Positions 52,474-64,000 of a stretch of 64,000 nt of DNA are shown here, one piece after another. The position numbers and the translations under genes were made by a program. Origin of the DNA: Rebecca billardiae RCC1528 (taxonomy: Eukaryota > Protista > Haptophyta); the NCBI GenBank assembly GCA_965240325.2, contig OZ251246.1, positions 62,001 through 126,000 on the forward strand. Direction: 5' to 3'. Each line of letters starts with the position of its first letter. Position 1 is the stretch's first letter. Under the pieces are notes generated by a model. That model ran no database searches. It saw nothing but the letters and a program-made list of their open reading frames with translations, and had not been told where the DNA came from.

Positions 52474-53161
52474 TTATTCCGCATCAGCGGGCGCCGCTGC
52501 GCGCTCGTCGTCAGCTGGGTCGTCGGAGAGGCCCGCGCCGTATAGCGTGGCGTTGGCGGCGGCGAGCGCCTCGCGCGCCTCGCCTTCGACCGCGCCGGTC
52601 ACCTTGGCCGGCCGCTCGAGCCCGTCCGACGCGTACCAGAGCGCGCACACGTGCGTGTCGCCCTCCGGCATCGGCATCGCCTCGCCCGACTTCTCGCGCA
52701 GCCTGGGCGCGGCGTGGCGCGGCGTGGCGACGGGCGTGAGGCGCACGCGTGCCCGCGTGCGCGGCGTCGCGCGCGGCGTGCGCGGCCGCGCCGCACCAGA
52801 CGGGCGGCCCCTGCGCGAGGAGGCGGCGCGTGGTCGCCGCGCAGTCCGAGTTCTTGAGCTGCTCGGTGTACTCGTCGAACTGCGTGTCGAGCAGGCGGCG
52901 GACGACGGCCTCGGAGAGCTTCGCCGGGCGCCACGTCCCCGACGGCGCGGACTGGTACTCCACGTAGTTCGTCTCGTCGATGTCGTCGAACGTGACCATG
53001 CACTCGAGCCCGTCCGGCGGCGGGCCGTGCGTCGCGCGCGCGTCCTCGGCTGCCGGGGCGCCGGGCGCGGGCTCTGCCATGGCGGCGGCGCTCGGCGCGT
53101 CAGCCGCGTCCTTCCCGGGCGAGAGGAGACTCGCCACGCCGCGCAGGCACGAGCTGAGCAT
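52474..53161 (-). CDS. Conserved-looking hypothetical protein, 2 exons (intron 52796-52703); alternative start 53080
   Basis: Globular sequence LECMVTFDDIDETNYVEYQ...DCAATTRRLLAQGPPVW joined in frame to LREKSGEAMPMPEGDTHVCALWY. Confidence 0.7.
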
Positions 53162-53434
53162 GCACACGCGGCCGCCCGCAGGAGCGGCGACCGCCGCGGC
53201 CTTCAACACCGGTGCACGCTTGGTCCCGCTTGCACGCGCGAGCTCGAGCGGGCGCCCGAGCACCCGCTGCGCACACAGTGCACCGGTGCAGCCTGAATGT
53301 CCGGACAAGGGCCGCCCTCCGGCTGGGCAGGCCGAGGCGTGTCCATCGCCTGCGGCGAGGGCGGCGCAATCTCGGACGAGGCTGACTGCGTGCCGCGAAG
53401 GCCGTCCGCCGCGCGTGGCTGCGGGGCGCGTGAG

Positions 53435-56400
53435 ATGGCCGCGGAGGCGACCCTCGTGCTGCTCAAGCCCGACGCGTACGCGCGTGGGCTGCTCTCCGAG
53501 ATCACCCGCCGCTTCGAGGCCGCCTCGCTCCGCATCGCCGGCCTCAAGCTGCTCATCCCGTCGCGCAAGCTCGCGCGCGCGCACTACGCGCTCGGCTTGC
53601 TCGACGAGGCGGACGGCGCGGACGCGGAGGAGGAGGACGCGCGCGTGGAGCGCGAGCTCGACGAGCGCTCGACGTTCCTGAGCTCCGGCCCCGTCCTCGC
53701 GCTCGTGCTCGAGGGCGCGAGCGCCGTGTCCAAGGCGCTCGCGCTCGCGGGCGAGCGCGACCCGCGCGACGCGCCGCCCGGCACCGTGCGCGGCGACCTC
53801 GCGTCCGCGCCGTCGCGCAACCTGGTGGAGTGCTCGGCGGACGTGGCGACGGCGAAGCGCGAGATCGCGCTGTGGTTCAAGGCCGACGAGCTCGCCGCGC
53901 ACCCGCAGGAGGCCCCCGTCGGCGCGGCGGGCGCGGGCGGCGCCGTGACCGCCGCGGCGCGCGCGGTGCCGCCGGGCGCGCGGCTGCCGCGCAAGGGCGC
54001 GCGCAACGTGCTGGTGACGTCGGCGCTGCCGTACGTGAACAACGTGCCGCACCTGGGGAACATCATCGGCTGCGTCCTCTCCGCCGACGTGTACGCGCGC
54101 TACATGCGCCAGCGCGGCGCCAACGCGATCTACATCTGCGGCACGGACGAGTACGGCACCGCGACCGAGATCAAGGCGCTGGCCGAGGGCCTCACGCCGC
54201 AGCAGATCTGCGACAAGTACCACGCGATCCACAAGGCGGTGTACGAGTGGTTCGACATCCAGTTCGACCACTTCGGCCGCACCTCGCGCCCGTACCAGCG
54301 CGAGATCGCGCAGGCCATCTTCATGGACGTGCACGGCAACGGCTACCTCCTCGAGAAGTCGAACAAGCAGCTCTACTCGGCTGCGCTCGGCAAGTTCCTC
54401 GCCGACCGGTACGTGCAGGGCACGTGCCCGCACTGCGGGTACGACGACGCGCGCGGCGACCAGTGCGACGCGTGCGGCAAGCTGCTCAACCCGACCGAGC
54501 TCGTCAACCCGATCTGCGCCGCGTCGGGCACCAAGCCCGTCGAGCGCGAGACGTCGCACCTGTACCTCGACCTGCCGCGGCTCACGGACGCGCTCACGCG
54601 CTGGATCGAGCGCACGGCCGTCTCGGGCTTCTGGACGAACAACTCGGTGACGACGACGCAGTCGTGGCTCAAGACGGGGCTGCAGCCGCGGTGCATCACG
54701 CGCGACCTCAAGTGGGGCGTGCCCGTCCCGCTGCCCGGCTGGGAGGAGAAGGTCTTCTACGTGTGGTTCGACGCGCCGATCGGGTACATCTCGATCACCG
54801 CCGGGTACGCGGGCGAGGGCTGGCGGCAGTGGTGGCACCCCGCGCCCGAGATGGAGGTGGAGCTCGTGCAGTTCATGGGCAAGGACAACATCCCGTTCCA
54901 CACGGTCATCTTCCCCGCCACGCTCATCGCGACCGGCAAGCCGTGGCTCATGCTGCACCACATCTCCACCACCGAGTACCTCAACTACGAGGACGGCAAG
55001 TTCTCAAAGTCGCGCGGCACCGGCGTGTTCGGCGACGCGGCCAAGGACACGGGCATCCCCGTCGCCGTCTTCCGGTACTACCTGCTCGTCAACCGGCCCG
55101 AGGTCGCCGACTCGGTCTTCAAGTGGGACGACCTCGCCGCCAAGAACAACACCGAGCTGCTCGCCAACCTGGGCAACTTTGTGAACCGCGCCGCGACGTT
55201 CATCAAGTCCAAGTTCGACGGGCGCATCCCGCGGCCCTCGTTCGACGGCCCCACCGAGCGCAAGCTCAAGGCGGACGTGGACGAGGCGCTCGCGGCGTAC
55301 ATCAAGGCGCTCGAGGCCGTGTCGCTCAAGGAGGGCCTGCGAATCGCGATGAACATCTCGCGCCTCGGCAACGTGTACCTGCAGGAGGCCGAGCCGTGGA
55401 AGAAGATCAAGGCGGACAAGGACGCAGCGGGCGTGTGCTGCGCCGTCGCGGCCAACCTGTGCCGCTTGCTCGCCGTGATCTTCGAGCCGTACATGGGCTG
55501 TGCGCGCCGCGCCGCGCGCACGCACCGCCCGGCTCGCGCCGCCGCGCGCGCGCTCGTCTATACCAGGCGCGCCGTCGCACCCTAGCACGGCGCGCCTTGT
55601 TTTCGGAGCGCACACCGATGTCTGCATCAAGCTACACTGGAAGCGACAGACTCCACTCGCCACAGCGATACTTGCTTGCAACACGCAGCCGTCCACCGCG
55701 CCCCCGCCCCCTTCCCCCCCACAGCCGCCGCCTGCACGCACGCGTGTGGCATGCCTCACTCGCGCCGACCACCGCCCATGCGGCGCGCGCGTCGCTCACC
55801 CGCCGCCCGCAGCTGAGTTTGCTGCGCGCGTGTTTGGCATGTTTGGGCTCGAGCACAACGCGCGCACCAACTTCATCCCAGACACATTCGAGATCACGAT
55901 GCCCGAGGGCCACGCCATCGGCGAGCCCGTCCTCCTCTTCAAGACGATCACGGACGAGGAGGTCGCCGCCCTCCGGAAACGGTTTGGCGGCACGCAGGAG
56001 GATGCCGCGCCCCAGGACGTCGAGCCCGTCTTCGCCCCGGACCTGCGTGTCGGGCGGATCGTCAGCGCGGACGACCACCCGGAGTCGGCAGATAGGCTGT
56101 GGGTGCTCAAGGTCGACCTGGGCAGCGAGACACGCCAGATCGTCGCCGGCGTGCGCGAGTACTACAAGACACCGGCGGAGCTCATTGGTCGCGGTGTGGT
56201 TATTGTGTGCAACCTCAAGGCCGTCTCACTGCGCGGCGTCGAGTCGCAGGGCATGATGCTGGCCGCCACGCGCAAGGACGCCTTTGGCCTGCTCCGCGCG
56301 CCGGAATCTGCGACACCGGGCAGCAGGGTTAACGCCGGTGATCTGCGCAACCCGGGTGAGGAGGTACGTGCTCACCCCCGCGTGTGCGAGCACGCGCGCG

Positions 56401-56843
56401 TCGATCCCTGGCCTGTTCGTTCCATTCCAGTCTGTCTGTCTGTGTGCGCACCCCATGGTTCTGGCTCATTCGTCGATCCGTGGACGAGCCAGTGGTGTCT
56501 ACCGTGGTGCTATAGTGGCGCACATGCGCACCCCGGGTGGAGCGGGCTGCCGCCATGCCCGCCTCACCCTAACGCAGTGCGACATGCTTTCTGCGCCGCG
56601 CCTGGCGGCACTGCCCTTTCATTGGGGCGCGCTTCCTCATCTTTCGCCTCCTGCCCACGCGATTGCGACTGTGCACAGGCGGGCACTTGGAAATACCCCA
56701 CCCTCGACCTGAAGGAGTTTCAGAAGGTGCCCCTGACGATCGGCGCGGGGTCGGTGGCGTTCTTCAAGAAGGCGCACCAGCTGCATGTTGGCGGCGAACC
56801 CGTCCTCGGCGAGAACGTGCCCGAGGGCGCTAAGATTAAGTAA
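53435..56843 (+). CDS. MARS: Cytosolic-type methionyl-tRNA synthetase with N-terminal NDK-like domain and C-terminal EMAPII/Trbp111-like tRNA-binding domain (exons 53435-55499, 55813-56363, 56679-56843)
   Basis: TSALPYVNNVPHLGNIIG (HIGH), Zn knuckle CPHCGYDDARGDQCDACG, YVWFDAPIGY, KFSKSRG (KMSKS); DLRVGRI...IVCNLKAVSLRGVESQGMML. GT-AG introns keep the frame. Confidence 0.93.
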
Positions 56844-57011: not shown

Positions 57012-60000
57012 CTACCGACCGGGCTCAGGCGAGGGGAGGGGCTCGGTGCTTGGAGCACCCGTGTTGCCTTCATTGAATGTCGGGCGCATCCGTAGGCGCG
57101 CGTCGCCCGACCACGTCACCGTGAAGCCATCCACCGCCCGATCGTTGACCCTCAGGACCGGCGATGGCTTAGGCGGCAGCGCGGGCGCCCCCTTCGGCCG
57201 TTCGCGCTTGACCATGCGAGTCAAAGACTTCAATGGCCCGTCGGCGTAAGTGCCCGCCATGAAGACGGAGCGCATCCACGGCACGTAGCCGATGTGCGCA
57301 TCGGGCCCGAGGTCATCTGCCGGCACGTCCGCACCGAATGGCGTCTTGTCCAAGCCTGCGATGCAGTGGGGCGGGCGGGCAGCAGGCAAACACGTCAGCG
57401 ACGAGCGTGCGATGTGGGGCGCACGCAACATGCGCGCGCGCGCACTTTGGTTGAAGAGCGCGCGCTGCTCCTTCGGCGCGATCGAGCCGAATGCTGCGCT
57501 GAAGGCATGATGCTCTTCCTGCAGGGTTGGCATCCGGGCGCGCATCCAGGGTGTGCGCACGCGGGGATCGCAAGGCGGGTTAGCCTGCAAGCACGCGGCA
57601 CAATCGAGCACAGGGTGAGTGAGGGTGCCAATTCGATGGTCAGTGAGCACGCACCCTCTTGGTGAGCTGCCGCTGGGGCTCAGACGCGTCGTCAATGCAC
57701 GGGAGCGTGCGCATCCGCAGGAGGATGCGCCCGCCGTCCGCCTCGACGAGTTCGAGCTTACGGTCGGCTCGCTCGAGCGTGCGCTCACGTCGCCCGTACG
57801 CGCTGTCATCCGCCACCCGCCTGGCTCTCGCCTCGGCAGCCTCCTGCTGCTTGCTCGCCTTGGCACGGGCCGCCGCCTCCCTGCGCTCCTGCGCACGCTC
57901 GCGCCGTGCTAGCTCGCGCTCGTGTCGACGTAATGCCTCGGCGTGCTGCTTCTGCTCCGTCCTCTCGAGCTGCTGCACCACCTTCTCGAGCACAGCCGCG
58001 CACACCCGGCGCACTTTCTCCGCGCCGCGGGGTTGCGACAGCGCCCTGCGGGGCGGCGCCTTCTCCGCCCTGATCGCCATTCCGTCGCCGAGTGCTCGAT
58101 TGAGCTCGGACCGGTCTGCCAGGCTCGCCGGCGCAATCGAAGAACGGAAATGTGGTGCCAAGGAGGGGTTGCTCAACGGGGCCATCGACTGCGCCGCCGA
58201 AGCGCCGGCCCGGCCGAGCGCGGTGAGGGGCACGCCGCCGGCTGCGTCTGCCGGGAGCGGCATGCCGAAGATCACCTGGCCGAGTACTGGTGTGCTCGTC
58301 GGGCCGTGCCCGTTCGGCGACTGGTCCTCGCGTGGTAGCGGGCACGAAGAGGAATTCTTAGACTTCTTCTTCTTGCGCTTGCCAGCTGGCGGATGCGCAG
58401 CAGAGACGTCTCCGACGTTCCCGGGCAAGACGTCCTCGCGCGCCGGCAGATGTGCTGGGAGGACGCCCTCGCGCGTCGCGAAGAAGTGCTGGGGCGGGGC
58501 GCTCTCGTGCGTCGGTGGTGGCTGCGCACCTTCGCGCGGCATCTGCGCTGAGAGCGCGCCATCGCGCGTGAAGAACACGTGCTGGGGCGGCGGCGCGCCC
58601 TCGCGCATCGGCATCTGCGCTGGGAGCGCGCCCGGCCCGCGCGTCGGCAGGTGATCGCCCTCGCGCATGTAGAACACCTGCTGAGCGCCCCCACGCATCA
58701 GCGGCTGCTCTTGGAGCGCGCCCTCACGCGTCAACGGCTGCGCGGCGGGCATGCCCTCGAGCGCCGCCATCAGATGCGCGTGACCGCTGCCCAGCAGGCC
58801 GCCGTCGCCCTGCAAGCGGCGTGCCTGCGCGCGGTGCTCGCTGCCGGCGGCGTCCTCGTGTGCCGCGGAGGGCTTCTTACGCTTCTTCTTGCGCGGCTCA
58901 CCCTCGACGCCCTGCAGGCCACCGCGACCCACGTGCGGCTCTGCCTCCAGGTCGGCGCCGCCTTTTGGCGGGCGCCCGCGCCCGCGCCCACGCCCGCGCC
59001 CGCGCCCACGCCCGCGCCCGAGCTGCGCGCTCGCGTACGCGGGCAGGGCGCTGGGGTCTGCGTAGCCTGCCACGACGGGCTGTGGCGCCGGCATCGACGA
59101 GCCCGTCGGCGCGTGCCCGACGGGCCAGTCGCACGCGGACGCACCGAATGGCTGCGAGGAGGCCGCCCTGTGCATGCCCCACGCGCCGTCGAGCGCAGCG
59201 CCGTAGCTCGTCGGCGGGAGCGCAGCGCCGCCGAACGCGCAGGGCCCGTGCGCCGCGTGCGCTGGGTGCGAGGGCGGCGGCTGTGCGGCGTGGGCGCCCG
59301 TCGACGCTTGGCGCGGCAGCTGCTCCCAAGGCTGCTGCTGCGCGTGCGCCGCGTGAGGCGGCTGCGAGTACGGCACGCCCGCGGGCTGCCCGATGGGCGC
59401 CGCCTGCGCCTGCGCGTAGGGCTCGAGCCCGGGCGCGGCCCCGACGCCCATGCGCATCTGCGGCGGCGGCGCGGACTGCGGCTGCGGTGGCGCGCTGAAG
59501 CTCTGCAAGCTGTCGCACGTGTGCTGGAGCGCGGCCGCCTTCGACTTGCTCTCCGCCTCGATTTCGAGCCAGTGCTGCTCGAAGGCCGTGGCCTCTGCGA
59601 TGCGCTGCGCCACGTGCGCGCGGCGCGCGGCGAGCGTGTCGGGCGGGGCGCCGGGGCGGCCGCCGCGCGGGGGCTGAGTGAGGGGCCGGCCCGGGCGCGC
59701 GCGATCGCGGCGCGCGCATGCGCGCGAGCCGAGCCGGCGCGCCCGCAGCCGTCCGCCCGTCTCGGCGCGCGCGCGCGCGCACACCTCCTGGGCCTCCTGG
59801 ACCTGCGCGTACTCGGAGCGCGCCTGCGCGCCGAGCTGCTCGAGCGCGTCGTGCATCGCCTCGAGCATGTGCGCGAGCTGCGGGATGTAGCGCAGCGACT
59901 CGACCTCGGCGGCGCGGCCGGTGTGCTGCTCCATCGTGCGCAGGTACGCGCCCTCGCGCTCGCGCCGGTGCGACTCCCACTGCGCGGTGCGCGCGCGCGC

Positions 60001-60552
60001 CGCCACGACCTTGGCGGCGGCCTCGTCGCACGCCGCCTCCGCCTCGCGCAGCCGCGTGCGCACCATCGTGAGCAGCTCCGCGCCACCCGGCTGGCCGCGG
60101 CCGGCGCCGCCGCCCGTGCGGTGCGCTTGGTGGTGGTGCGCGTGTGCGCCGCACTGCGGCGGCTGCTGCTGCCCCAAGGCCGGCGGCGCGGCGCCGTGCG
60201 GCGCCATGGCGTGCCCGGCGGCCGAGGGGTGCTGCAGCTGCGCGTGCGGCACGAGCGCGTGCGCGGCCGCCGCGGGTTGCGCCACGTGGCGCGGCTGGCC
60301 GTGCGCCGCGCACGCCGAGGGCTCGCCGTAGCCGCCGGATGGCTGCGGCGGGTGCGCAGCCGCGGCGGCGGCGTGCATCGGCGCGGAGTGCGCCAGCCCC
60401 CTCGGCCAGTGCGCGGCGGCGGCGCCGTCGTCGGCTCGCGCGCGCGGCGTGAGCTCCGCGCCGCCGCTGCCGCAGCGGCCCGGCGGCGGCGGCGGCGGCG
60501 CGAGCGCGGCGGCGGCGGCGCGCGCGGCCGCGACCGCGTGCGCTTCCGCCGT

Positions 60553-60588
<36 letters not shown>

Positions 60589-60716
60589 CCACTCGGCTCC
60601 GGCCGCCCAGTAGGGCTGCGGCGGGCGCGGCGAGGGCGCGACGGGCATGCCGACGACGGCGTAGCCGAGCGGCGGCGGGGCGTACGGTCGCGGCGGCGGC
60701 GGCGTGCGCGCGTACA

Positions 60717-60754
<38 letters not shown>

Positions 60755-62855
60755 GCGGCCGCGGCGGCTGCGGCGCCGGGCGTGTCGGGCTGCGGCCTGT
60801 GCCGCAGCTGCTCGAGCAGCCCCTCGCGCCGCGCCTCCGCCTCGTGGTGCGCCACCACCCTGCTGATCAGCGTGCCGAGGCAGGTGGCGACCTCGCGCAC
60901 GCTCGCCTCCTCCTCGTGCTCGCGCGCCACCCTCGGCGCCTCGAACGCGATCAGCTGCGCGTGCAGCTCGTCGGGCAGCTCCTCCTCCTCCACCCACACG
61001 GACGCGCCCGCGCCCGCAGAGGGCGCGGAGGGCGCGGCGCACGGCCGAGCGGGCGTGCCGCCCGCGGACGCGCGCGGCGCGGCGGCGGCGCGCGGCGGCG
61101 GCGCGGCGCGGCGGCACAGGTAGCGCCGGCCGCCTTCGTCGCGCAGCAGCGCGTCGGCGATGACGACGGGCTCGGCGCACGCGTCCGCGTCGCCGTCCGC
61201 GCGCGCCGCGCCCAGCCTGCGCGCCTTCTCGCGCTGCCGCTGCAGGTGCTCCCAGCGCACCGCGCGCAGCAGCGCGCACAGCGCGAGCGAGAGCTGGCCG
61301 AGCGTGGACACGCGCGCGGCGCCCGCCCGCCAGCGCGCGCGCGGCGTGGGCCGCGCGCCGCCGTCGCGCACGCGCGCCGCGTGCGCGCAGCTCTCGCAGT
61401 GCCAGTCGCCGTCCGGGATCTGCGCGTCCGCCATCGGGGCCCACAGGCAGTAGGTGTGGTGCGCGCCGTCGCACCCGTCGCACAGCAGCAGCCGCGCGTC
61501 GTCGTCGTTGCCGCCGCACTCGGCGCACACGACGTCGTCCGCGCCGGCGCCCGGCTCGTCACCCGCCACGGAGGAGGCGGGGCTGCTGCCGCCGCCGCCG
61601 CCGTCCGCGCCGTCCAGGGCGCCGCCCCCGCCGCCGCCAGCGCCGCGGCCGAGCGCGGCGCGCCGCCGCCCGCCGCCGCCCGCCGCCGCCTCGTCGGCGG
61701 CGGCGCGCTCGGCGGCCGCTGCGCCGTCCGCGCCCGCGCCCGCGTCCGCGTCGTCGTCCGCGCGCTCGGACGAGTCGGAGCTCTCGTCGGCCTCGGCCTC
61801 CTGCTCCTCCTCCTCCTCCTCCTCCTCCTCCTCGTCGCGGACGACGCGCCGACCGCGCCCGCCGCCTCGCCCGCCGCGCCCGCCGCGCCCGCCGCGCCCG
61901 CCGCGCCCGCCGCCGCGCCCGCCGCGCCCGCCGCGCCCGCCGCGCCCGCCGCGCCCGCCGCGCCCGCCGCGCCCGCCCGCGCCGGCGCCGCCCTCCGCGT
62001 TCGCGCGCGCCGCCTCGCGCCGCGCGGCCACGGCCGCGGCGAGCGCGTTCTTCGACGGCAGTCCGAACACGCCGGTCGCGACGTTGTGCACGGCCAGCCC
62101 CGCCGCGTGCTCGAGCGCGCGCAGCCGCGCGCACGCGCCGCCGGGCTGCACGGGGAGCCACTCGTCCCACGCGGGGCCCCAGCCGTCGAAGCGCACGTGC
62201 AGCGCGCCGGGGCGCGCGCCGTCGATCTGCGCGGGGCACCAGCGCCCGCCCTCGTCGAGGCAGAGCACGCGCGCGCCCACGCGCAGCCCCGCGCCCACGC
62301 CCATGGCCCGCGCGGCGCTTGCCGAGCAGGCCTCGCAGAACCAGTCGCCCTCGGGCGGCTGCACGAGCGGCACCTTGAGGCAGAACGTGTGGTGCGCGCC
62401 GCCGCAGCCGTCGCACAGCATCAGCGACGCCTCGTGCGCCCCCGAGCCGCAGCCCAGGCAGTGGATCGCCTCGGGCCCGTCGACGGGCGTGAGGTCGTGC
62501 GGCCGCGCGTTCGAGATCGCGATCTCGCGCAGGGACGCCGTGTCCGTCAGCTCGTACCACTCGCGCGACCCCGACTCCGAGCCCTCGTCCGAGTCGGAGG
62601 GCGAGTCCGAGGCGCTGCCCGCCGCGCGCGCCGCGCGGCCGCGCGCGCCGAGCTCGACGAGCACGCGCGCGCCCTCCGCCACGCCGCCGTGCGCGGGCAC
62701 GCGCTTGCAGACGGTCGCCAGCCGCCAGGCGCCGCGCTTGTCGCGCGCGTGCAGCCGGTGGCCGGGGACAAACGCGTCGAGGCGCGCGACGCCCAGCGCC
62801 TCGCGCGCGCCCTGCGCCGCGTCGGGCGCGTCGGTCGCGGCGGCGACCGCGGCGT

Positions 62856-62901
<46 letters not shown>

Positions 62902-64000
62902 GCCGCCGGCCGACGCGCCGCGCAGCACGGGCGGCGGCGGGTGGTGCGCAGCGCCGTGCGCGCACCCGCGCTCCGCGTGCGACGCGCCGCCCGCGCACGC
63001 GCTCGCGCACGCGCCGGCAGCGCCCCCGGCGCCGGCGCCGGCGCCAGCGCCGCGCCCGCCGCCCCGCCCGCGCCCGCGCCCGCGGCCCCGCCCGCGCCCG
63101 CGCCCGCCGCCGCGCCCGCCGCCGCCGTGCGCCGGCCCCTCGGCCTTGGGCCGCTTGGGCGCGCGCCCGGCCTCGGGGCCGTCCTCGTCCTCGTCCTCGT
63201 CAGAGGCAGCGCTGCCCGCGGCCGGCGGCGGCGGCGGCGGCGGCGGCATCGACGCGCGCGTCGCCGAGCGCGAGGCGCGGTCCGTGCGCGCCACCACGAC
63301 CGCGCTCGCGTTCTTGCGCGGCCGCCCGCGCTTCTTGCCCACCGCCTCCACCGCGGGCGCGTCGTCGGCCGCGGGCGCGTCGGCCGCGGGCGCCGGCGCG
63401 CCGTCGGGCGGCCACAGCCGCCTGCCGCCCGGCGGCGTCGCCGCCGGTGCGGCCGGCGCGTCGGCCGGCGCGTCGGGAGCCGCGGGCGCGGCGGCCGCCG
63501 GCACCGTGGCGCGCGCTTCGCCACCACCGGCCGCGTCGGCCGCGGCGGGCGCGTCGGTGGGCGCCGCGCCGTGCGCCGCAGCCTCCGCGCAGGCCGCCGG
63601 CGCCGCCGCGCCGTCCGCGTCCGCGCCGCCGCCGGCCGTCCCGCCGCCCGCCGCCCCTCCGCCGCCGCCGCGGCCGGCGACAGCGCCCGCGGCGGGCGCC
63701 GCGGCCGCGCCGCGGGTGCCGGCGCCCTCCGCCGCCGCCACCGCGGGCGCGCCGCCGCCGCCGCGCTCGGCGTCGGCGTCCGCGTCGGCGCCCGCGTCGG
63801 TCTCGCCGGCGAGCAGCGCGGCGCGGCGGCGGCGGCGGCGCTCGCGCTCGGCGCTACCGCGGCGCGCGTCGTCGTCGCTGTGGCGCTGCGCGCGCGAGAT
63901 CTCGGCGGCGAGCGCGGCGGCGGAGCGCGCGCTCGCGCCGACCGAGCCGCCGAGCGAGTGCCACGCCCGCGCGAGCGCGACCGAGTGCAGCGCGCGCTCG
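57012..64000 (-). CDS. Large chromatin reader: two PHD fingers, two Tudor/MBT-like domains, AT-hooks, BPTF/DDT-PHD-like motifs; 5' end outside window, 3' exons tentative
   Basis: CLGCGSG...LMLCDGCGGAHHTFCL...WFCEAC (~62465-62330) and CAECGG...LLLCDGCDGAHHTYCL...WHCESC (~61530-61385); HVRFDGWGPAWDEW; KKRGRPRK and GRGRPPK; TLGQLSLALCALLRAVRW...WVEEEELP. Frame open to the window edge. Confidence 0.8.

Follow-up and report, generated by a model that had tools for sequence, protein, structure and literature searches.

A nucleoside diphosphate kinase-fold pseudoenzyme fused to the N-terminus of methionyl-tRNA synthetase in the haptophyte Rebecca billardiae

Fusion of the pseudoenzyme to methionyl-tRNA synthetase

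The gene for methionyl-tRNA synthetase (MetRS) of Rebecca billardiae RCC1528 encodes, ahead of the synthetase, a domain with the fold of nucleoside diphosphate kinase (NDK) in which the phospho-histidine is replaced by glutamate. The gene is located on contig OZ251246.1, of which 64,000 nt were analysed (forward-strand positions 62,001-126,000); this whole stretch is referred to as the window, and coordinates are counted from its first letter. A preliminary description of the window had proposed an NDK-fold pseudoenzyme at the N-terminus of the MetRS, and the sequence comparisons confirm that the fusion is real. The catalytic His and part of the nucleotide-binding residues are lost, and the architecture is kept in orthologues. 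The NDK-MetRS is not isolated but part of a haptophyte family of NDK domains with a His-to-Glu replacement, found also on histidyl-tRNA synthetase (HisRS) and on a second type of MetRS.

Residues 1-152 of the product are an NDK fold. The Pfam family PF00334 matches residues 4-152 with an E value of 3.5e-29 (101.8 bits against a cutoff of 27), and about 115 NDK chains were matched by phmmer among the PDB sequences, the best with E 1.3e-28, in alignments that set RNLVECSAD opposite RNIIHGSDG. An AlphaFold2 model of residues 1-157, based on an alignment of 71 NDK domains, has a mean predicted local distance difference test score (pLDDT) of 95.4 and a predicted template modelling score (pTM) of 0.89. 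Compared with solved NDKs by Foldseek, the model gives template modelling (TM) scores of 0.81-0.86 and root mean square deviations of 1.7-3.3 Å. No family of the glutathione S-transferase (GST) type is present among the Pfam matches with E up to 0.1, and the N-terminus is wholly occupied by the NDK fold.

The remainder is a class I MetRS. PF09334 (tRNA-synt_1g) matches residues 192-586 (E 8e-148) and PF19303 (Anticodon_3) is matched with E 1.6e-14; the core carries the motifs HLGN and KFSKS, the zinc knuckle CPHCG...CDACG and an anticodon-binding domain. By its sequence, the gene is that of a cytosolic-type MetRS with a plant-type C-terminal tRNA_bind domain, from a pavlovophyte-like haptophyte.

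The open reading frame (ORF) at 53297-55585 on the + strand holds the NDK-like segment, a 35-residue linker and the MetRS core in a single frame without a stop, and PF00334 and PF09334 are found in one translation, as expected if both parts share the same exon and frame as first described. Throughout exon 1 the G+C content at third codon positions (GC3) is high, at 0.99 for the NDK and the MetRS segments alike and 1.00 for the linker that joins them. The upstream stretch of the ORF (53297-53434) has G+C contents of 0.72, 0.76 and 0.80 at the three codon positions and no codon periodicity, and the GC3 values of the two introns are 0.74 and 0.61. Because of the GC3 contrast with the upstream stretch, the NDK segment is read as coding in the MetRS frame with the start at the ATG at 53435. 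The orthologous proteins begin with M-E-R-T right at beta-strand 1, in agreement with this start, and in one orthologue (L002) an in-frame TGA is found 9 nt upstream of the ATG. There is neither a stop nor a Met between the NDK part and HLGN, and the next Met sits beyond HLGN; any active MetRS from this gene must therefore include the NDK domain.

A word-index search with residues 1-190 gave four protein clusters with precomputed PF00334, PF09334 and PF19303 (plus PF01588). One is Diacronema lutheri KFE25_002505 (930 aa), which has the UniRef name 'methionine--tRNA ligase' together with PF00334, and the three others with the same architecture are environmental. P0004, one of the environmental clusters, lies on a 3252-nt JGI contig and has a 931-codon ORF that is unbroken across both intron positions of the window and of D. 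lutheri, by which the contig looks like a spliced transcript. No ATG occurs in the 273 nt ahead of the NDK start, which has the first ATG in this frame. The His-to-Glu replacement recurs in the orthologues as an acidic residue in all of them (E, E, E, D). The NDK core is 62-73% identical to that of three orthologues and the MetRS part 76-80%, against 30-35% for an acidic insertion within the domain and 37-43% for the linker. The NDK core is thus near the level of MetRS and the linker far lower, which argues for a constraint on the domain of the same order as that on the enzyme.

The gene product comprises 926 codons over three exons (53435-56843, +). The exon blocks were placed by tblastn of the D. 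lutheri protein (P0001) and of P0004, which gave three collinear blocks; the junctions were read from the sequence and the exons were searched separately for domains. The features, with the evidence for each, are as follows.

53435-53437, + strand: start codon ATG (start of the orthologues at MERT, no codon periodicity upstream)
53435-55499, + strand: exon 1 (tblastn and junction sequence)
53435-53890, + strand: NDK-fold pseudoenzyme domain, aa 1-152 (PF00334, PDB matches, AlphaFold2, Foldseek, identity to orthologues)
53600-53668, + strand: acidic insertion, aa 56-78, lengthening the alphaA/alpha2 hairpin and specific to the subgroup of this MetRS type (alignment and AlphaFold2 model)
53828-53830, + strand: GAG, Glu132 at the phospho-histidine site, human His118 (codon read, PDB alignment)
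53891-53995, + strand: Ala/Gly/Pro-rich linker, aa 153-187 (low identity and variable length among orthologues; no Met, no stop)
53996-55499, + strand: MetRS catalytic domain and most of the anticodon-binding domain, the remainder of exon 1 (PF09334, PF19303)
54050-54061, + strand: HIGH-type motif HLGN (read in translation, invariant in orthologues)
54998-55012, + strand: KMSKS-type motif KFSKS (read in translation)
55500-55812, + strand: intron 1, GT..AG, phase 1 (tblastn, sequence, no codon periodicity)
55813-56363, + strand: exon 2, end of the anticodon domain and EMAPII/Trbp111-type tRNA_bind domain (PF01588 with E 1.3e-27, PF19303, tblastn)
56364-56678, + strand: intron 2, GT..AG, phase 0 (tblastn, sequence, codon-position G+C)
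56679-56843, + strand: exon 3 with TAA stop at 56841-56843 (tblastn, 64-69% identity to the C-termini of orthologues)

The position of intron 1 is that of a retained intron in a read-through model of the D. lutheri gene (P0002). Within the gene, GC3 is 0.99 in exon 1 against 0.85 in exons 2 and 3.

Residues lost and kept in the active site

Compared with human NDK, the window domain has His118 replaced by Glu132, Phe60 by Glu, Arg88 by Leu102 and Thr94 by Arg108, and it keeps Lys11, Tyr51, Arg119, Asn129, Ser134 and Glu143 (human K12, Y52, R105, N115, S120 and E129). The Glu is encoded by the GAG that the preliminary description had placed at 53828 (codon 132, in RNLVECSAD where canonical NDKs have RNxxHGSD). 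The alignment likewise agrees with the loss of the Arg88 equivalent and the retention of the Lys, Tyr, Arg105, Asn and Glu129 equivalents reported there, and it extends the losses to Phe60, the base-stacking residue, and to Thr94. Neither the catalytic His nor the full nucleotide-binding set (Lys12, Tyr52, Phe60, Arg88, Thr94, Arg105 and Asn115) is thus present in the window.

The changes are largely common to the group. The following counts were obtained from the 71-row alignment of 31 domains of the type found in the window (dead-type) and 40 canonical NDKs, the latter being the best-scoring 40 and not a balanced sample; positions are those of human NDK.

His118: canonical H in 40/40; dead-type E in 26 and D in 5 (acidic in 31/31)
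Arg88: canonical R in 97%; dead-type mostly Leu, Arg kept in 6/31
Thr94: canonical T in 95%; dead-type mostly Ala, Arg in the window
Phe60: canonical F in 33/40; dead-type A, E or G, Glu in the window
Asp121 and Ser122: canonical D in 97% and S in 88%; dead-type Ala and Asp
Glu129: canonical E in 100%; dead-type E in only 52%
Lys12: canonical K in 100%; dead-type kept in 87%
Tyr52: canonical Y in 100%; dead-type kept in 77%
Arg105: canonical R in 100%; dead-type kept in 100%
Asn115: canonical N in 97%; dead-type kept in 87%

Further equivalents retained in the dead-type rows are those of Gly92, of Pro96, which is the Kpn-loop proline, of Gly106-Asp107 and of Glu29. Ping-pong phosphotransfer through a phospho-His is predicted to be impossible in these domains. 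Since Phe60, Arg88 and Thr94 are lost, holding of the base and the beta-phosphate in the canonical manner is unlikely as well, and the nucleotide-sensing function that had been suggested for the domain is weakened.

The acidic insertion noted in the preliminary description is clearly present, residues 53-80 containing 12 D/E against 3 K/R. In the AlphaFold2 model it forms a longer alphaA/alpha2 hairpin with helices at residues 44-58 and 64-82, and the alignment shows a gap at this place in the HisRS-type domains and in 40/40 canonical NDKs. As its source, the canonical NDKs closest to the dead-type group in the tree (P0035, P0046 and others) were considered and rejected; their own insertion is in the Kpn-loop region and their His is kept. 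The whole domain has a net charge of -6 and an isoelectric point of about 5, and direct RNA binding by so acidic a domain was judged unlikely.

Distribution and phylogeny of the domain

HMMER was used to search 1.84 billion cluster representatives with a profile that spans the NDK part and the first 40 MetRS residues. Over its whole length the profile gave a strong match to one 50%-identity cluster only (392 bits, the next best match being 170 bits), so that the cytosolic-type NDK-MetRS has a narrow distribution. The architecture has been catalogued automatically, but it is not widespread. Similarly, the statement that an NDK-MetRS fusion is undescribed holds for the papers found but not for the databases, where it is already present as automatic annotation (D. 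lutheri KFE25_002505). A full-text literature search on MetRS, HisRS, appended domains, haptophytes and D. lutheri gave no description of an NDK-synthetase fusion, one paper mentioning NDK in passing, and a 2015 review of synthetase complexes in evolution includes no NDK, algae or haptophytes.

Other NDK domains that carry a Glu at the His site also emerged from this profile search; they stand at the N-terminus of HisRS or of a second MetRS type (MetRS2, as distinct from the MetRS1 of the window). Together with the MetRS1 domains they are called NDK-E here. The NDK-E domains have in common an acidic His site, a replaced Phe60, a mostly replaced Arg88 and Thr94, an N-terminal position before a synthetase and a common branch in the phylogenetic tree. 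The HisRS fusions include P0010/P0154 (647 aa) and numerous fragments whose last residues are the HisRS start motif. The MetRS2 fusions (P0012, P0081 and P0088) have the signature ...NYANGPPHMGH; one locus (L007, 6001-9092) has downstream ORFs with Anticodon_3 and a C-terminal tRNA_bind domain, and the fusions of this type were found only on marine Tara, ENA and Logan contigs (L007, L091-L094).

A search with the full NDK-HisRS gave two named carriers, both belonging to the Prymnesiophyceae, Prymnesium parvum (AB1Y20_017612) and Calcidiscus leptoporus (A0A7S0P618); the remaining copies are from Tara Oceans and other marine contigs. The P. parvum protein is one that keeps Arg88. On the sequences at hand, the Pavlovales bear NDK-E on MetRS and the Prymnesiophyceae on HisRS.

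The dead NDK and the HisRS core are joined by a Lys-rich linker (GKSK..AKEAKK..AKK) in L004:1014-2957, L005:4235-6178, L006:6001-7944 and P0180 (P. parvum), which is reminiscent of the tRNA-binding helices, Lys-rich or of the WHEP type, that other eukaryotic synthetases carry. In the HisRS of D. lutheri (KFE25_007287, P0191) an unexplained N-terminal extension of about 165 residues leads into a Lys-rich helix of this kind, and the sole Pfam match of residues 1-165 is a weak one to AsnRS_N (E 0.049).

The two groups of fusions were linked by the exhaustive profile search. Queried with the window's NDK region, the word index gave the four MetRS1 clusters only and missed the HisRS fusions, and the NDK region of HisRS as query missed the MetRS fusions. 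A scan of metagenomes for further partners, based on a six-row alignment, gave none that was new: 79 of the 80 loci kept are ordinary bacterial NDKs, which one of the two patterns used (the ...WF...EL motif) also fits, and only L019 is dead-type. Look-ups in the ESM Atlas gave generic HisRS and NDK clusters only. Other NDK architectures seen among the matches of the profile search are a protein with an NDK and a C2 domain (P0036) and proteins with 4-7 tandem NDK domains (P0006, P0045), the first domain in each row having Tyr or Phe at the His site.

The phylogenetic analyses place the dead-type domains together. A quick maximum likelihood tree of 91 NDK domains has 31/31 of them on one side of a branch with an SH-aLRT (Shimodaira-Hasegawa-like approximate likelihood ratio test) value of 97. 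In an IQ-TREE analysis of the 71 rows from which the trait columns (Arg88, Thr94, the His motif and Glu129) were removed, one change between dead and canonical suffices; the branch has a support of 94/95 and 94% of the bootstrap trees agree. The partner groups are each monophyletic, with supports of 100/100 for MetRS1, 100/99 for MetRS2 and 98/94 for HisRS. Within the limits of a tree of 134 columns, with bootstrap values not fully settled, no inferred root and the best-scoring 40 as canonical rows, these results favour the descent of the NDK-E domains from one pseudo-NDK, with its attachment to the different synthetases coming afterwards.

Possible roles of the domain

The role that we consider to have about an even chance of being the true one is that of a tethered module for protein-protein assembly or docking. 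The domain would no longer run phosphotransfer and would probably be unable to hold a nucleotide in the canonical way, and the surfaces by which NDK folds associate into dimers, tetramers and hexamers would be used for assembly instead. It may thereby oligomerise MetRS or dock it to other NDK-E proteins or to NDK itself, a role parallel to that of the GST-like domain of yeast and animal MetRS. An assembly role is favoured because the pocket is dismantled yet the scaffold, including the Kpn-loop proline, is kept, because the module is always N-terminal on a linker and recurs on several enzymes, and because characterised NDKs are obligate oligomers.

Three points weigh against this role. With Lys12, Tyr52, Arg105 and Asn115 retained and nothing but acidic residues at the His site, the pocket itself is still under selection, and a ligand-binding function would explain this no less well than a pure scaffold. 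The HisRS of D. lutheri (KFE25_007287) has no NDK domain. Finally, we infer the expression of the fused form in the Rebecca genome from its relatives.

In a wider and more tentative form of the proposal, for which the chances are clearly lower, haptophytes would have a multi-enzyme assembly of their own in place of the GST-based multi-synthetase complex, with homotypic contacts of NDK-E as its 'glue'. The NDK-E domains of different proteins would then co-assemble as mixed NDK-like oligomers, with MetRS as a member in the Pavlovales and HisRS and the second MetRS type in the Prymnesiophyceae, and catalytic NDK subunits might join. If true, such an assembly would physically couple the methionine cycle or nucleotide metabolism to tRNA charging.

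The main alternative, which we regard as rather doubtful, is that the domain is a ligand sensor. The remodelled pocket would bind a small molecule other than a nucleoside di- or triphosphate, for example an adenosyl metabolite or a compound of the coenzyme A (CoA) type, and tune MetRS allosterically, with the acidic residue at the His site taking part in the new site. The retention of Lys12 (87%), Arg105 (100%) and Asn115 (87%) and the absence of drift at the His site (E or D in 31/31) are in line with this, and the change of Arg88, Thr94 and Phe60 to Leu, Ala or others resembles re-specification rather than decay. There are also structures of NME1/NME2 that hold CoA, succinyl-CoA or myristoyl-CoA in the nucleotide pocket (PDB 7zl8, 8oov, 7kpf). 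However, the HisRS fusions have no obvious tie to methionine metabolism, the MetRS2 subgroup loses both Asn115 and Lys12 (DSLVEC, LLRPDA), and the long flexible linker offers no evident allosteric route.

It is improbable that the domain is a neutral relic, an NDK that was fused by accident upstream of MetRS, became inactive and has persisted as a folded cap without a function. The catalytic residues are gone and the insertion and the linker evolve fast, as such a history would predict, but the core is 62-73% identical where the linkers are only about 40% identical. The module has moreover been retained on three synthetases in two haptophyte classes, is present in 4/4 MetRS1 orthologue clusters and always has an acidic His site.

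The uniformly acidic site would also fit a domain that is still catalytic, Glu or Asp serving as acyl-phosphate acceptor or general base in a new phosphotransfer or hydrolysis. An acidic residue occupies the nucleophile position in 31/31 domains and Lys12, Tyr52 and Arg105 are kept around it. This explanation is nevertheless very improbable, given that Phe60, Arg88 and Thr94 are lost and that Glu129 and Asp121 are not conserved; we know of no precedent for an NDK that acts through a carboxylate.

That the fusion is an artefact of the gene model, the NDK part being a separate upstream gene or pseudogene and MetRS transcripts starting downstream or splicing it out, is hardly credible: long chance ORFs do occur in DNA of about 75% G+C, but the NDK part is joined to HLGN with neither stop nor Met, GC3 remains at 0.99-1.00 across the junction, four other clusters have kept the fused ORF, one of them on a transcript-like and intron-free contig, and the joint profile reaches 392 bits in an exhaustive search.

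Comparison with known systems

Appended non-catalytic domains, such as GST-like, WHEP and EMAPII domains and leucine zippers, let eukaryotic synthetases build complexes and gain functions. Those known are almost all from animals, fungi, plants and a few parasites. The NDK-fold pseudoenzyme would be a new kind of appended synthetase domain, reused in a major marine algal group on HisRS and on two types of MetRS, with its active site rebuilt in a uniform way (His to Glu or Asp in 31/31). As such, NDK-E may offer an entry point to the organisation of synthetases outside the usual models and to the reuse of 'dead' NDK.

Catalytically impaired NDK folds are known from animals, in group II NME5, NME7, NME8 and NME9 and in the C-terminal domain of RP2, where they serve binding or assembly in multidomain proteins with Dpy-30, thioredoxin and tubulin cofactor C-like domains as partners. 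To our knowledge, none of these is found on a tRNA synthetase and none has a systematic His-to-Glu replacement.

A close likeness is that to NDK-E-HisRS of P. parvum and C. leptoporus, known as database entries. The two kinds of fusion share a Glu at the His site, the loss of Arg88, Thr94 and Phe60 in most cases, an N-terminal position, a low-complexity linker and the same side of the tree. The HisRS fusions differ in their partner, a class II synthetase, in their Lys-rich linker and in having no acidic hairpin insertion.

With the plant-type and Caenorhabditis elegans-type MetRS, which have a C-terminal EMAPII/p43-like tRNA-binding domain (PMC4394549), the Rebecca protein shares the order of core and tRNA_bind (PF01588) and the lack of an N-terminal GST domain. 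It differs from them in the added dead NDK. We know of no N-terminal appended domain in these two types.

The GST-like N-terminal domains of yeast, animal and apicomplexan MetRS assemble complexes (PMC8216282, PMC3930741, PMC9136112, PMC4394549). Like them, the Rebecca domain is a non-catalytic enzyme fold that is N-terminal on a linker and shared with other synthetases of the organism group. Unlike them, it has the NDK ferredoxin-like fold, which is unrelated to GST, and it is known here from sequence and predicted structure. In Mycoplasma penetrans, MetRS is dimerised by tandem N-terminal ancillary domains (PMC13215547). This enzyme is also enlarged by enzyme-derived N-terminal domains, but it is bacterial and the domains are aminotransferase-like and nucleotidyltransferase-like and not NDK.

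Neighbouring genes

A divergent gene on the - strand (52782-53081) starts at 53081 and is separated from the MetRS ATG by a shared upstream region of 353 bp; its first 100 residues have no Pfam match. In two of the orthologous loci (L002 and L003) the divergent neighbour of MetRS is of the RidA family (PF01042), and the neighbourhood is thus not conserved. On the other side of the gene, the - strand has an ORF of 2033 codons (57640-63741) with two PHD fingers (PF00628, E 1.8e-17), long GR/RGG repeats and polyQ and polyA tracts. From this composition the ORF likely encodes a chromatin reader.

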